Positions 37,209-60,754 of a DNA stretch of 64,000 nt are shown piece by piece. The position numbers and the translations under genes are program-made. The notes below the pieces were generated by a model. That model made no database searches. It had not been told where the DNA came from and saw nothing but the letters and a program-made list of their open reading frames with translations. The stretch lies in NCBI GenBank assembly GCA_033442325.1, contig JAWQFM010000023.1, positions 123,361 through 187,360 on the forward strand. The letters run 5' to 3'. Position 1 is the stretch's first letter. Each line of letters opens with the position of its first letter. This DNA is from Salpingoeca rosetta. Its lineage: Eukaryota > Protista > Choanoflagellata.

Positions 37209-38876
37209 TCACAGCAGTCGTCGCTTCATCTCTCCAGCAGCAAAGTCATACACCATCTCATCATCATCATCGTCGTCGTCGTCGTCATCATCAACCATTG
37301 CGTGCATGTGGGCACCGTCCAAGGGCGGCAGTGCAAAGTCCTCGTCCAAGTCATCATCGCTGCTGTCTGTGATGGCGAACGCAGCGCTACCCCCGAGCTC
37401 GTGCATGAGCATGCTGTCTGCGCCGACAATGTTGTACGTGACCCTCGCTGATGATGATGATGACGTGAGGTGCTTGTTGAAGTGGTGCACCCACGCCATC
37501 ATGAACAAAAACACCCCCGTTGCAATGGACAGCACAATGACGATGATGACAAGGAACGTCTCCGGGCCAACGCGGTCGAAGAGCGTGCCCACGGCAAGTG
37601 GAATCAGCATCTCGCCAAGCGCCGCGCCAACAACCAATATGCTGGTGGCGGCGTTGGAGATGTCCATGTATGTCTCGACCATGTGATACCCGCTCGGGAA
37701 GATGCTGGCCATGGAGAAGCCAAACACGCCCGAGCCAATCCAGATGACCGTTGCGTTGTGCGGGAAGCACGCCATTGCCACGGAGGCGAGCATGCAGCCG
37801 ACGAGGTCCACAATGACGAGCGTGCGCGGGCTGAACCGCGTGGAGAGCGGGATGGCAAAGAAGCGACCAACAGCAAACAGCCCCCAATAGACGGACGTCA
37901 CCAGCGCGCCGTCATGCTCCGAAAACTGCAGCTCGCAGCTCTTGACGGTGTAACTGTAGATGTAGCCGCCGTAGCTCACCTCCGTGCCCACATACAGCAT
38001 GAAGAACAAGAACGCAGCCGACAGCAGGCCAACCACGTACACGCGCGAGCGTGGCTTTGGCGTCGCGTCTGCCGCGCCGTCACCACCATGGCCACCGTGG
38101 CCGCCAGCCATGATGTCACGTGGCGTGAAGCGCGCTAGGGCCAAGAAGGCAAGTGCGGGCGGCAAGAGCAGGCTTGCCCCGATGCGGTATGCTGTGGCGA
38201 CGTGAGACTCAAACCCGGGCGGCACGGTCCCTGATTCGCCATCGCCAGCAGCAACGGTCATCGTCGTCGTCGTCGCCAGTGGCGTGACGGGTGTTGTGGC
38301 GAGTGTGGACGGTGGTGACGTCGCGGTGGCTGTACAGTTGATGCCCTCAATGGTGGATGTTTGCGCAATGAACTGCTTTGCGAGCAGCGGCGCGATGAAT
38401 GCGCCAACCCCAAAGCAGAAGTGGAGCCCTTGCAGGTATGGTCCACAGTTTGCCTTCCAACAGCGGATGAGCAGCACGTTTCCTCCCGTGTCGAGGAAGC
38501 CCATGGCCAGCCCTTGCAGCGACACCACTGCCGCCAAGACGGGGACGTTCTTGGCGAGCGGCACGCAAAAGGAACCGGTTGCGGCCAGAAGCAGCGTGGT
38601 GGCGAGCATGGTGGCGCTGTACGCGGTGCGGTCGAAGATGAGTCCGCCCACGATGCTGCCGAGCAAGTAGCCCAGACTGCGCGCGGTGAAGGCCAGTGCC
38701 ATGTGGGCAATGGTGGCATCGAGGCGGGTGGCCAGGTCCAGCAGCGTGGGCCCCAGCAAGGACAACAGCAAGCCCAGGCAGAAGAAGGCTGTATAGTTGG
38801 TCGCTGTCAGTGACAACCGCAGCCACCGCGGCAGCGTCGCTGCTGTTGGTGTCTCTGCTGTCTTCATCTTGGCCAT
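37209..38876 (-). CDS. MFS sugar transporter, MFSD4/FucP (fucose:H+ symporter) family, single exon
   Basis: About 12 hydrophobic segments; LGPTLLDLA, GYLLGSIVGGLIFDR, GFLDTGGNVL, YLQGLHFCFGVGAFIAP, LYVGTEVSYGGYIYSY, YWGLFAVGRFFAI, MASIFPS; acidic C-terminal tail. Confidence 0.88.
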   Translation of the reverse strand: MAKMKTAETPTAATLPRWLRLSLTATNYTAFFCLGLLLSLLGPTLLDLATRLDATIAHMALAFTARSLGYLLGSIVGGLIFDRTAYSATMLATTLLLAATGSFCVPLAKNVPVLAAVVSLQGLAMGFLDTGGNVLLIRCWKANCGPYLQGLHFCFGVGAFIAPLLAKQFIAQTSTIEGINCTATATSPPSTLATTPVTPLATTTTMTVAAGDGESGTVPPGFESHVATAYRIGASLLLPPALAFLALARFTPRDIMAGGHGGHGGDGAADATPKPRSRVYVVGLLSAAFLFFMLYVGTEVSYGGYIYSYTVKSCELQFSEHDGALVTSVYWGLFAVGRFFAIPLSTRFSPRTLVIVDLVGCMLASVAMACFPHNATVIWIGSGVFGFSMASIFPSGYHMVETYMDISNAATSILVVGAALGEMLIPLAVGTLFDRVGPETFLVIIVIVLSIATGVFLFMMAWVHHFNKHLTSSSSSARVTYNIVGADSMLMHELGGSAAFAITDSSDDDLDEDFALPPLDGAHMHAMVDDDDDDDDDDDEMVYDFAAGEMKRRLL

Positions 38877-38957
38877 TGTCGTCGTCTGTGGTGCTGGCGA
38901 TTCGCGAATAACTTCATACACATTTCTGGAATGACAAACGAAGAAGACAGACGAACG

Positions 38958-57212: not shown

Positions 57213-60200
57213 CTAGGCGCGCGGGTTGTGGGACATGAGGTCGATGTCAGCCTTCACCATCTCCTTGACCAGGTCCTGCACAGCGGCCGAGGTGAGGCGA
57301 TGGTCATGTAGTGATGGCGAGGGGATGGTGATACTGTGTGTGTGTGTGTGTGTGTGTGTGTCTGTATGTGTGTGTGTGTGTGTGTGTGTGTGTGTCTGTG
57401 CGTGCGTGCGTGTGTGTGCGTGCCTCCTCGTCTGCCTCTGCGTCTTACGTTGAGGGAGATCTTTGGCTTCCAGCCGAGCTGCCGCTCCGCCTTCTCCGGA
57501 TTGCCCAGCAGGAAATCAACCTCCGCAGGGCGATAGAACTGATGACAGTGGTGGTGATGGTCGTCGACGGTGGCAGTTGGCGAGGGTGAGCAGGCACCTC
57601 CATCACCATGTTGACCATGACAGCAACAACAGCAACAACAGCAGCAGCAGTAGCAGCAACAACAACAGCAGCAGCAGCAGGAATAGCTCACCTTCTCTGA
57701 GACGCGAACGCGGACCTTGCCCGTCTCCTTGTCCTTTCCAACCTCGTTGACACCCTCGCCCTCCCACACAATCGTCACGCCAATCTCCCCAAACGCCAGC
57801 TCAACAAACTCTCGAACAGAGTGCGCCTCCTGTCACGTCCAGTGTGTGTGTGTGTGTGTGTGTGTGTGTGTGTGTGTGTGTGTGTGTGTGTGTGTGTGTG
57901 TGTGTGTGTGTGTGAGTGTGAGTGTGTTTGTTTCAAGGGGTTGGGGAGCAGTTGTGGCTGCTAGGCGGTGTAGCACGTAGACGCACAGACGCAGACACAC
58001 ACTCTACCCCCTCTCCATGCCAGCAGCGCACGTTTGTGGCGATGACGTAGTCGTCTGGGGTGTCCTGTTGGAGCATGAGCCACATCATCTCCACATAGTC
58101 CCGCGCATGGCCCCAGTCCCGCTTTGCATCAAGGTTGCCCAGCACAACCTGTGCACACACATATGTATATATGGGCAGAGGCACACACACACACACAGAC
58201 ACACACACAGACACAAACAAAACAATAAATACGCACATACATACACAAGCGTGCGTGAATGCATTGAAAAACGGAGAGAGAGAGAGAGAGAGAGAGAGAG
58301 AGAGAGAGAGAGAGAGAGAGTGTGTGTGTGTGTGTGTGTGTGTGTGTGTGTGTGTGCGCGCGTGTCGATGACATTGGCGTGAGCGTAATGCAACAGCGGC
58401 TTACACGAAGCCATCGAAGTGACCCCACGCGCACCCAAACACCACCGATTGTGGGCGCATTTCAAAAACTGTGTGCTGTGGTGGTGGTGGTGGTGGTGGT
58501 TGATGGCGGGAGTGCTTACCTCCTCCTGCAGACCCAGGGAAATCTTGGCGACGGCGCGTGTGATCTTGCGCGTCACAAACGTCTCGCCTGTAAACCACGA
58601 AGGCAACGTGTGGAGGGGTGTGTGTGGAGAAGTCAGTGGTGATTGACGCAGGCACGGCCACACAGAAACACGCACAGAACCACACACAGAACACACAGAA
58701 CACACAGAAACACGCACACACACATTACAACGGACAGCGAGTGATGCGCACCTCTGCGCGGGCTCTCGTGGTTGAAGAGAATGCCGTTGTTGCAGTGCAT
58801 GCCATATGCCTCGCGGTAGTTGACAACAATCCAGTACCCGTACATCTTCGCAACACCATATGGCGACCTGTCACCCGCACACGACACACACACACACACA
58901 CGAAGCACACACGAAACACAACGGTCAACTCATGTCAGGAGCGTGCATTGGCAAATGACCAGCAGCGCTACGCCTCTCACAAAGTGTCGTATGTGTGTGT
59001 GTGCATGTGTGTACATGTGTGTGCATGTGTGTGTACATGTGTGTGTGTACATGTGTGTGTTGGCGGCAGGAGCGGCACCTGGGGTGGAAGGGCGTCGTCT
59101 CCGTCTGCGGAATCTCGTGCACTTTCCCGTACAGCTCACTAGACGCACGCACGCACACACGCACGCACGTGAGCAGGGTAAACGGGTACAGCATTGGTTG
59201 GGTGAGAAAAGGATGGTATGTTGAAAAGGCAACAACAGCAGCATCATCGAGCGACAAAACACCAACCACACACACACACACACACACAGACACACACAGA
59301 CACACAGGGGTGCATCCCACCCTCCCATCCAACGCGCGTGTGCACCTTGTTGAGGCCTGGTAGAAGCGGACGGTGTCGCCCAGGCCGGCGGTGCGCAGCG
59401 CATCCAGGAGCCGGAGGGTACCGAGGCCTGTCGCGTCGAGTGGCATGGTTGCAGGAGTATTGCAGCAGGAGGGAACAGCGGTGCACAGGTTATGGGCTCG
59501 TTGCAGCACACGTTCAGTTGCGCTAACGAGGAACAGTCATAAAGTACACGGACAGGTAGACACCCACACACACACACGCAGAAAGAGAAAGCACGCACAC
59601 ACACACACACACACACACACACACACACACACACAAGCGCACATACGCAACCGCGGCAATGTGAGACGCACCGTCGACGTTCCCCGTATACTCAGCCATA
59701 TCGAAGGAGACCTTGACGTGGCTCATGGCACCGAGGTTGTACACCTCATCCGGCTTCACCTCTGTGATGATCTTGATCAGACACGTGCTGTCCGTCAAGT
59801 CACCGTAGTGCAGCACCATGTCTGCATTCACACACACATGCACACATGCACACATATGGGGTGAGGGAGGAATAACAAAGTGAGGATCGAAGCAAGTGTC
59901 GTTCGGGATGGATCGTTGTGTGGGTATCCCACAAGCGGCAGCCACAATCACGTACTCTTCTGTGCGTGGGTGAGTGGGTTGGCAAACAGGTGCTCGATGC
60001 GGCCTGTGTTGAAGGATGAGGAGCGGCGAATGATGCCATGGACCTGTGTTCATACGTGTGTGTGTGTGTGTTCGCATACGCACGTGCGGAATGCGGTGAA
60101 TCGACATACAAGCACAAGCAGAGGCACACAGACACACATACACACACACACACACACACAAGCGCAAGCAGAGGTATAACCACAGCCGCAGGCATGGCCA

Positions 60201-60754
60201 TACTCAAACAAGTCAAGAGGTAAAATGTCGTTGAAAATCCCTCATCAGTGCTGTTGGTTGTTGGTTGTTGTTTGTTGTTGCGAAGCCCGTGATGCACCCC
60301 ACCTTGTATCCCTTCTCAATCAGGAGCTCGGCCAAGTAGGATCCATCCTGTACAAAAGCCGTTGGGCGAGAGGGGATGGTGCGATCAGTGGGGGTGCTGT
60401 TGTTCCAAGGTGCGATTGCGTACAGAAATGCTGGGGCACCTTGACCGTGACATACAGACGCAGACAAGCACAGGTATAGACACACAGACACAGACAAGAG
60501 ACAGGAATAGAGAGACACACACGCAGGTACAGGCACAGACAAAGACAGGAATAGACACACACACACACACACACACAGGTACAGACACAGACACATACAC
60601 AGACACACAGTTACACAAAAAGAGACAGACACAGAGACACAGAAGTAAACAGCAGTCAAGCATTCAAACACCCAACACCCACCTGTCCCGTGATGCCTGT
60701 GATCAGGGCCACACGCCCCTCTGTCTTGGCCTTCTTCGGCTTTGCCTCACTCAT
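57213..60754 (-). CDS. GMDS: GDP-mannose 4,6-dehydratase
   Basis: [116 protein letters not shown]. Confidence 0.97.

Follow-up and report, generated by a model that had tools for sequence, protein, structure and literature searches.

A neighbourhood of fucose-related genes from the choanoflagellate Salpingoeca rosetta, with a possible use in thecate cells

Introduction

Genes of one pathway lie together in several described systems. In Escherichia coli, the colanic acid wca cluster holds genes of GDP-fucose supply and of fucosyltransfer (gmd, fcl and wcaI, which we saw directly), and bacterial fucose-utilisation loci combine fucP, for an FHS-family carrier, with fucosidases. In the yeast GAL and DAL clusters, and in the specialised-metabolism clusters of fungi and plants, a pathway is encoded by genes that are not homologous to one another, lie side by side and are regulated together. 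The sulfo-Lewis-type machinery of animals (FUT and CHST enzymes of the Golgi, with turnover by GH29 fucosidases) is encoded by dispersed genes. Here we examined a 64,000-nucleotide stretch of the genome of the choanoflagellate Salpingoeca rosetta (contig C23:123361-187360, hereafter the window; JAWQFM010000023.1 of assembly GCA_033442325.1), in which positions 37209 to 60754 hold genes for a carrier of the major facilitator superfamily (MFS), a GH29 alpha-L-fucosidase, a sulfotransferase-like protein, a GT10 fucosyltransferase and a GDP-mannose 4,6-dehydratase (GMD).

The S. rosetta genes resemble each of these systems in part. They bring GDP-fucose supply and fucosyltransfer together, as wca does, and their FHS-family carrier adjoins a fucosidase, as in the fucose-utilisation loci. 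Unlike the genes of the bacterial polysaccharide and fucose loci, they are separate eukaryotic genes with introns, lie on either strand and are interrupted by unrelated genes; they include no fcl and form no operon, they mix synthesis with degradation, and the named relatives of their carrier are annotated for glucose and not for fucose. The likeness to the yeast, fungal and plant clusters lies in the adjacency and co-regulation of non-homologous genes of one putative pathway; in contrast to those clusters, the genes are not contiguous, the pathway is incomplete, conservation across species was not found in the few comparisons made, and a glycan epitope, not a small molecule, would be the product. 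With the animal machinery they share a GT10 alpha-1,3-fucosyltransferase, a Golgi-type sulfotransferase fold and a GH29 enzyme, but they are not dispersed as the animal genes are, the sulfotransferase-like protein falls outside the Pfam families, and the fucosidase is subfamily-B-like. Lysosomal FUCA1 is a GH29 subfamily-A enzyme.

Thecate cells secrete an extracellular theca, and the theca and extracellular matrix underlie attachment and cell differentiation in choanoflagellates. Among the papers that we searched, none describes fucose genes of S. rosetta or a clustering of glycan genes in it, and none reports a functional gene cluster of this sort for a choanoflagellate. In our assessment, the chances are evenly balanced that the window holds a small group of neighbouring genes that are related in function and serve a secreted or surface glycan, fucosylated and probably sulfated, mainly in thecate cells.

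Results

Fucose genes of the genome and the chance of their co-location

Genome-wide searches covered the 55.4-Mb, 68-contig S. rosetta assembly. We found 13 fucose-dedicated loci, and only the GH29, GT10 and GMD genes of the window were located on contig C23. The loci on other contigs included the second GH29 gene (C7), a homolog of Fcl/GDP-fucose synthase (C22), O-FucT genes (C4 and C2), PF07959 fucose kinase/pyrophosphorylase genes (C16 and C2), GT11 genes (C1 and C16) and FUT8 (C6). The first-pass annotation of the window had cautioned that several of its families are often multi-copy. This caveat was lifted by the searches: GT10, GMD, the carrier and the sulfotransferase-like gene were each represented by a single locus and GH29 by two.

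It had also proposed that the co-location be compared with chance, and for the triple of GH29, GT10 and GMD the chance proved small (5e-5 to 2.8e-3, depending on the number of loci N and the distance measure). In particular, the simulated chance that any three of N=10-25 fucose loci fall within 22 kb was 5e-5 to 1e-3, and the chance that three of them fall within eight gene slots was 1.7e-4 to 2.8e-3. With the 13 loci found, the chance of the triple was about 1e-4 to 4e-4; the locus counts are lower bounds, and the upper part of the simulated range is the safer one. After correction for multiple looks, the co-location is suggestive and not decisive.

Expression in attached cells

Expression values, as fragments per kilobase of transcript per million mapped reads (FPKM), were those of Fairclough et al. 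2013 (PMC4054682), with three attached (thecate) samples, one swimmer, three rosette samples and one chain sample. In the copy of the supplement of that paper that we used, file 11 is captioned 'upregulated in colonial cells', and its header and statistics are those of attached cells against colony and swimmer; the captions seem to be shifted, and the file to be in effect the list of thecate-upregulated genes. The set that we followed comprised GH29, the sulfotransferase-like gene, GT10 (as PTSG_12944) and GMD, the carrier being outside it. We assigned PTSG_12943 to the sulfotransferase-like gene by its ratio of counts to FPKM, which gives 975 nt when scaled on GH29 and GMD, by its having no annotated domain and by its identifier, which is next to PTSG_12944.

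Co-expression across life stages, another of the checks that had been proposed, was borne out, all four genes being upregulated in attached cells. The log2 fold change of attached cells against colony was 5.14 for PTSG_12943 (sulfotransferase-like; P 5e-18), 2.78 for PTSG_12944 (NADK and GT10; P 3.7e-8), 1.82 for PTSG_09867 (GH29; P 1.3e-4) and 1.21 for PTSG_09875 (GMD; P 9e-3). The probability that four of four genes fall by chance in a list of 12% of the genes is about 2e-4. Over the eight samples of this one data set, the correlation of log FPKM for the sulfotransferase-like gene with GT10 was 0.97, and each of these two was correlated with GH29 at 0.80-0.86. The flanking myosin gene PTSG_09865 had the opposite pattern, being lower in attached cells and anticorrelated. 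The co-expression shows shared use in thecate cells and not cluster-level control, because glycan genes elsewhere in the genome share the pattern.

The GH29 fucosidase

To us, the most telling biochemical point is that the fucosidase appears, by its sequence relatives and motifs, to be of an alpha-1,3/4 type that matches the linkage expected of GT10. Its GT-AG model, in frame throughout, comprises exons 38958-39423, 39757-40034, 40301-40460, 40744-40842, 41150-41245, 41463-41578 and 41748-42026. Exon 1 matched PF01120 with 32.1 bits (cut-off 25.2; 29.7 bits in the genome search). The public model (439 aa), with its start at 39090, also carries PF01120. It omits a clear signal-peptide-like N-terminus (38958-39089) that begins with an in-frame ATG at 38958, and its start is probably truncated. 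With the different start discounted, the seven-exon model exceeds the public one by about 14 residues.

The best PDB matches of exon 2 were to the Bifidobacterium alpha-1,3/4-fucosidase 3UES/3MO4 (weak; E 1e-7, 35 bits), followed by 5K9H, 3EYP (BT2192) and 6ORG (SpGH29), and AlfC-type enzymes scored far lower. Besides the named alpha-1,3/4-fucosidases, some of these top matches are enzymes that we take to belong to subfamily B. The 'VWLDDG' of exon 2 was aligned with the 'VWLD-G' of 3UES, with the Asp of WLD conserved; we take the Asp of this W-x-D motif to be the catalytic nucleophile of GH29. About 44 residues past it, and by inspection only, the 'WMGNE' of exon 3 fits the spacing of the subfamily-B acid/base Glu, and 'WMGNE', 'HFWFW' and 'SVGRGCNFVLN' in exons 3-5 are, also by inspection, segments presumably typical of subfamily B. 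Exons 3 and 4, each searched alone against PDB, had no GH29 match. The enzyme is best described as subfamily-B-like, the type that would be specific for alpha-1,3/4 linkages. It resembles the solved subfamily-B enzymes (AfcB, 3UES/3MO4; BT2192, 3EYP; SpGH29, 6ORG) in that these are its best solved sequence relatives and the nucleophile Asp is aligned; it differs from them in being eukaryotic and intron-rich with a signal-peptide-like N-terminus, and its specificity is a predicted one.

The GT10 fucosyltransferase

PF00852 was weak on single GT10 exons and reached 120.5 bits (E 8.7e-35; profile 3-170 of 182) on the spliced public model P0127. The best solved relatives were human FUT9, FucTA (a plant- or insect-type core alpha-1,3-fucosyltransferase) and the Helicobacter pylori FucT. 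The conserved alpha-1,3-fucosyltransferase motif (F-x-x-x-F-E-N ... Y-x-T-E-K) was found as YKFYFAFENARSDYYITEK, aligned with the corresponding segment of FUT9. At E<=0.01, P0127 had no reported match to the N-terminal GT10 domain PF17039. On visual inspection, motifs resembling those of the N-domain are present in exons 1-2, and the open reading frame (ORF) upstream of the annotated acceptor opens with a hydrophobic stretch; an in-frame ATG at 47610 belongs to the GT10 ORF itself. The lack of a PF17039 match may reflect divergence and not absence of the domain. Beyond the catalytic domain we observed a tail of about 150 residues (43692-44100, minus strand), low-complexity and rich in Gly, Asp and Thr and then coiled-coil-like, which is unusual for GT10.

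An assembly gap (44610-44709) lies inside the last GT10 intron. Exon order and orientation over it are supported, because the GT10 profile and the FUT9 alignment run from exon 45499-45440 into exon 44261-43692: the Pfam match is unbroken over residues 483-671 of the spliced model, across the exon junction at residue 634, and the FUT9 alignment also crosses this junction. What is supported is the order and orientation of the exons and not the continuity of the DNA.

The gap is adjoined by a 594-bp block (44710-45303) that is identical to 46399-46992 at 552 of 552 unmasked positions, with no gaps. It holds an extra pair of GT10 exons 3 and 4 (45148-45089 and 44863-44798), which lie within the last GT10 intron. 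The genome contained only these two copies. A transposon was considered and rejected, both copies being local with no others in the genome. Since the copy is exact and ends at the edge of the gap, it points either to an artefact of assembly or to a local duplication of very recent date.

The sulfotransferase-like gene

The 324-aa protein has an N-terminal hydrophobic anchor and a type-II arrangement. Sequence searches against Pfam, NCBIfam and PDB gave no match, and the sulfotransferase families (PF00685, PF03567, PF13469 and others) were unmatched; a profile search of PDB returned only weak sulfotransferase rows (E 0.4-1). Five relatives were found among 5.8 billion proteins. In the alignment of this family, SYGGSGS, HxHD and RxP are invariant at the places expected for such motifs, and the lysine of the canonical P-K-x-G-T-T is not conserved.

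The AlphaFold model had a pLDDT (predicted local distance difference test) of 70, higher in the domain, and a Foldseek search with it against PDB gave nothing significant. In an exhaustive VIA-align comparison, 25 of the 25 top matches were sulfotransferases (Z 5.8-7.7, moderate only since under 8), with 150-183 residues aligned over 99-312; P-loop kinases stood behind them at Z 5.7 or less. The nearest neighbours in the ESM Atlas were clusters of giant viruses (Nucleocytoviricota) and PF00685 clusters, with a template modelling (TM) score of 0.72 to a bacterial PF00685 cluster. The structural comparisons support, for the predicted structure, the fold of sulfotransferases that use 3'-phosphoadenosine-5'-phosphosulfate, outside any known sequence family. 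The label of the first-pass annotation is thus retained for the fold, given the top 25 structural matches, and not for a sequence family, as neither Pfam nor NCBIfam matched. One distant homolog was located on a giant-virus-like contig, and another directly follows a GT7-type glycosyltransferase gene on another contig. As the family is tiny and, by its language-model and structural neighbours, mostly of giant viruses, an exchange of genes between virus and host is a possibility.

The MFS carrier

The carrier matched Pfam MFS_1 with 88 bits, and its public model likewise has 555 aa. Its best NCBIfam models were TsgA and gluP, both under their cut-offs. At 32-39% identity, its named relatives were animal proteins called 'sodium-dependent glucose transporter 1' (MFSD4B/MFS4B) and metagenomic ones called 'FHS family Na+ dependent glucose MFS transporter 1', with one relative named fucose permease; unnamed choanoflagellate orthologs were closer (up to 55% identity). 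A sequence search for a related solved structure found none. The MFS fold and the FHS identity of the nearest named relatives place the protein in the FHS family (TC 2.A.1.7: FucP, GluP, MFSD4). It had been proposed as a FucP/MFSD4-family carrier of fucose: the family was upheld and fucose as the substrate was not, as the named relatives are annotated as glucose carriers. By its sequence, the carrier looks ordinarily eukaryotic.

GMD

Five ORFs of GMD exons matched TIGR01472 in order (profile 11-47, 53-116, 151-193, 211-253 and 253-298), each match alone being under the whole-protein cut-off since these are exons. The PF16363 matches to the exons were also collinear, and the public model has 362 aa. 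The other PF16363 loci tested were GalE, a dTDP-glucose-dehydratase-like gene and an HpnA-like gene. GMD looks ordinarily eukaryotic on these comparisons. A gene at C23:68722 was tried as a linked GDP-fucose synthase and rejected: it is HpnA/3-beta-HSD-like, and the Fcl homolog is the one on C22.

The NAD kinase and its fused public model

The NAD kinase matched NF003406 with 304 bits (cut-off 211) and is 55-57% identical to alphaproteobacterial enzymes (Hyphomicrobium, Azospirillum, Phenylobacterium). It is listed as FOREIGN, a candidate for horizontal transfer, in the supplement of Matriano et al. 2021 (PMC7971027). Its ortholog in a related species, P0128, is a stand-alone protein of 422 aa with no GT10 domain. 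These findings did not support the place in the pathway that the first-pass annotation had given this gene, which is most likely a bystander with no relation to the genes for fucose.

In the public annotation, the NAD kinase and GT10 are joined in one protein of 823 aa (PTSG_12944; EGD79139.1 / XP_004989224.1 / F2UND4), whose model spans 43689-48914 on the minus strand and splices from 47781 to 47550, thereby dropping the last two NAD kinase codons, the stop, and the ATG and hydrophobic start of GT10. We consider this fusion probably a merge of two genes in annotation. That the public model is correct and the protein bifunctional is unlikely, even if the annotation that joins the two parts is reportedly based on RNA-seq and only 161 bp separate the NAD kinase stop from the GT10 ATG: the kinase frame has its own stop two codons past the annotated donor, GT10 starts from a separate ATG with a hydrophobic N-terminus that is absent from the fusion, and the ortholog P0128 lacks GT10. 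Furthermore, none of the 8 top GT10 relatives scanned carried a NAD kinase domain, and a bacterial-type kinase attached to a lumenal Golgi transferase would be topologically awkward.

Gene order, spacers and sequence gaps

Public gene models (GCA_000188695.1, scaffold GL832984.1) were converted into window coordinates for gene order. The six genes that the first-pass annotation had named were all recovered approximately where it had placed them, by profile, structure and public-model matches, and the three unrelated genes that it had seen between the NAD kinase and GMD were confirmed as a DEP-SH2 gene, a 137-aa gene and a gene for a 240-aa secreted protein (Table 1). Past GMD lies a DEAD_2 helicase, and the flanks of the neighbourhood held no more glycan genes. 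The intergenic spacers are small, with about 80 bp where genes diverge, about 300 bp where they converge and about 390 bp where they lie in tandem. The spacer of about 80 bp between the carrier and the fucosidase is a candidate bidirectional promoter.

Table 1. Features of the S. rosetta neighbourhood, in window coordinates.
Feature	Position	Strand	Basis or remark
Myosin PTSG_09865	ends near 36885	+	Public model
MFSD4B/NaGLT1-like MFS carrier (FHS family)	37209-38876	-	Single exon, 555 aa; MFS_1 match
Divergent spacer, carrier ATG to upstream ATG of fucosidase	38877-38957		About 80 bp; translations
GH29 alpha-L-fucosidase, subfamily-B-like, PTSG_09867	38958-42026	+	Seven GT-AG exons; PF01120
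Orphan sulfotransferase-fold gene PTSG_12943	42324-43298	-	Single exon, 324 aa; structural matches
GT10 alpha-1,3-fucosyltransferase, GT10 part of PTSG_12944	43689-47610	-	PF00852, FUT9 alignment
GT10 exons, public model	47550-47356, 47163-47044, 46837-46778, 46552-46487, ~46314-46216, 45963-45904, ~45782-45669, 45499-45440, 44261-43692	-	Exon map
Assembly gap inside last GT10 intron	44610-44709		Flanking exons collinear with GT10 profile and FUT9
Exact 594-bp copy adjoining gap	44710-45303		Identity to 46399-46992
Upstream copy of duplicated block, with GT10 exons 3 and 4 in expected order	46399-46992		Pairwise comparison
NAD kinase, alphaproteobacterial type	47772-48914	-	NF003406 match
DEP-SH2 gene, intervening	49356-53639	-	Public model; without evident glycan role
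137-aa gene, intervening	54271-55519	-	Weak AMPK-CBM (AMPK beta carbohydrate-binding-module) match; without evident glycan role
240-aa secreted protein, intervening	55727-56766	+	Signal peptide, no Pfam family; without evident glycan role
GDP-mannose 4,6-dehydratase (GMD) PTSG_09875	57213-60754	-	Multi-exon; TIGR01472 exon matches in order

Two other gaps were found in the window, at 30111-30210 and at 35563-36331; the second consists of 769 N inside the myosin gene that adjoins the carrier. CA/GT (and GAGT) microsatellites are dense in introns and spacers (39430-39750, 40470-41140, 41250-41460, 41590-41745, 42200-42320 and 44290-44430). Their translations are long artefactual His-Thr or Cys-Val ORFs, which mislead ORF lists and codon-bias scores.

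Discussion

The first-pass annotation had read these genes as a pathway-level cluster. The identities of the genes, their low copy number, the small chance of their co-location, their joint upregulation and the agreement in linkage between GH29 and GT10 speak for that proposal; the membership of the NAD kinase, the carriage of fucose and, in the few tests made, a conserved linkage were not supported. In our best reading, the core is formed by GH29, the sulfotransferase-like gene and GT10, plausibly joined by the carrier, and GMD belongs to the neighbourhood more loosely.

In such a neighbourhood, GMD would produce the committed intermediate on the way to GDP-fucose, with synthase and Golgi transporter encoded elsewhere, and a Golgi-located GT10 would add alpha-1,3-linked fucose to glycans that contain N-acetylglucosamine. 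The neighbouring type-II protein with the sulfotransferase fold would modify the same or a nearby glycan, and a secreted or lysosomal GH29 would remove alpha-1,3/4 fucose in remodelling or turnover. The MFSD4-type carrier, with a promoter region that would be common with GH29, may move a released sugar. Here we infer the linkage specificities, the sulfation, what the carrier transports, and that the target is the theca or extracellular matrix.

Several observations weigh against a functional neighbourhood. The genes were selected post hoc, with many pathways looked at; the GDP-fucose synthase homolog and all the TPT-type sugar-nucleotide transporters lie off this contig, and four non-glycan genes break up the fucose set. 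As for expression, 1,410 out of 11,628 genes (about 12%) are thecate-upregulated (PMC4054682), the signal of PTSG_12944 comprises its NAD kinase and GT10 parts together and inseparably, and GMD has a modest fold change and a log FPKM correlation of only about 0.5 with the core. Glycan genes outside the neighbourhood are also strongly thecate-specific, namely the unlinked GT11 alpha-1,2-fucosyltransferase PTSG_06316 and the Sulfotransfer_2-type carbohydrate sulfotransferase PTSG_09898, about 23 gene identifiers beyond GMD. Finally, conserved linkage in related genomes, which the first-pass annotation had named as a check, was not found in the few tests made, on the contexts of carrier, sulfotransferase-like and GT10 homologs. 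The MFSD4 homolog of Monosiga brevicollis had no GH29 within 10 kb, its neighbours being TPX2 and unknown genes, and two long contigs with MFSD4 homologs had no fucosidase nearby. A sulfotransferase-like homolog of 44% identity had no GT10 upstream on contigs of about 3 kb, where the upstream ORF was unrelated, and the NAD kinase of the related species stands alone, without GT10. The nearest GT10 representatives were tandem multi-GT10 models or were located on virus-like metagenome contigs, and offered no informative neighbourhood.

Much of this would also be expected if ordinary genes had come to lie together by chance and were co-expressed through a general glycan and secretory programme of thecate cells, an account that we regard as a real possibility short of a probable one. 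It agrees with the intervening unrelated genes, with the lack of a conserved linkage in what was compared, with the location of the rest of the fucose pathway on other contigs, and with the share of thecate-upregulated genes (at least 12%), among which unlinked fucose and sulfate genes behave alike; moreover, with N=25 loci and 50-200 comparable pathways, 0.1-0.5 chance triples are expected. Chance alone is harder to reconcile with the values of about 1e-4 to 4e-4 for the triple at the 13 loci found and of about 2e-4 for four of four genes in the thecate list, with a writing and an erasing enzyme that agree in linkage class, and with a correlation of 0.97 for adjacent genes beside an anticorrelated myosin gene. 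A narrower account, in which only the four genes of the core (carrier, GH29, sulfotransferase-like gene and GT10; 37.2-47.6 kb) are functionally related and GMD and the NAD kinase are accidental neighbours, seems to us somewhat unlikely. The spacers inside the core are of 80-390 bp and GMD is 10 kb and four genes away; correlations are 0.80-0.97 within the core against about 0.5 for GMD, which supplies all the fucosyltransferases, at least six other loci among them. Against this stand the listing of GMD among those genes that attached cells upregulate and the fact that, once GMD is set aside, just GH29 and GT10 remain as fucose genes a priori, a pair with a chance of 0.02-0.12 of lying within two slots.

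A foreign-gene island, in which the neighbourhood would mark where transferred DNA settled and not selection on a pathway, appears very improbable. The alphaproteobacterial affinity and FOREIGN listing of the NAD kinase would fit it, as would the Nucleocytoviricota neighbours of the sulfotransferase-like protein with a homolog on a giant-virus-like contig, the virus-like metagenome contig that carries a full-length GT10 relative ranking among the closest, and the bacterial origin of the best PDB matches of GH29. However, all but two single-exon genes have spliceosomal introns and host-type microsatellites, the carrier and GMD look ordinarily eukaryotic, and PDB is biased to bacterial GH29 enzymes. 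A foreign origin would in any case be compatible with a present shared function.

For users of these genes, the probable merge of NAD kinase and GT10, the probably truncated start of GH29 and the duplication by the GT10 gap are practical annotation problems. CRISPR tools are reported for S. rosetta (PMC7314544), and the cluster is therefore directly testable. Were the cluster real, it would add a rare holozoan example of gene clustering at the level of a pathway. A more specific and improbable version of a functional neighbourhood is a module, specific to one cell type, that would place a sulfo-Lewis-like epitope, sulfated and alpha-1,3-fucosylated, on the theca or substrate-attachment matrix, with writer (GT10), modifier (a giant-virus-related sulfotransferase), eraser (the subfamily-B-like GH29) and precursor supply (GMD) physically clustered and co-regulated. 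If this were true, it would be the first cluster of genes for a glycan pathway from a close relative of animals and a pre-animal example of the logic of fucose and sulfate adhesion glycans that animals later used.

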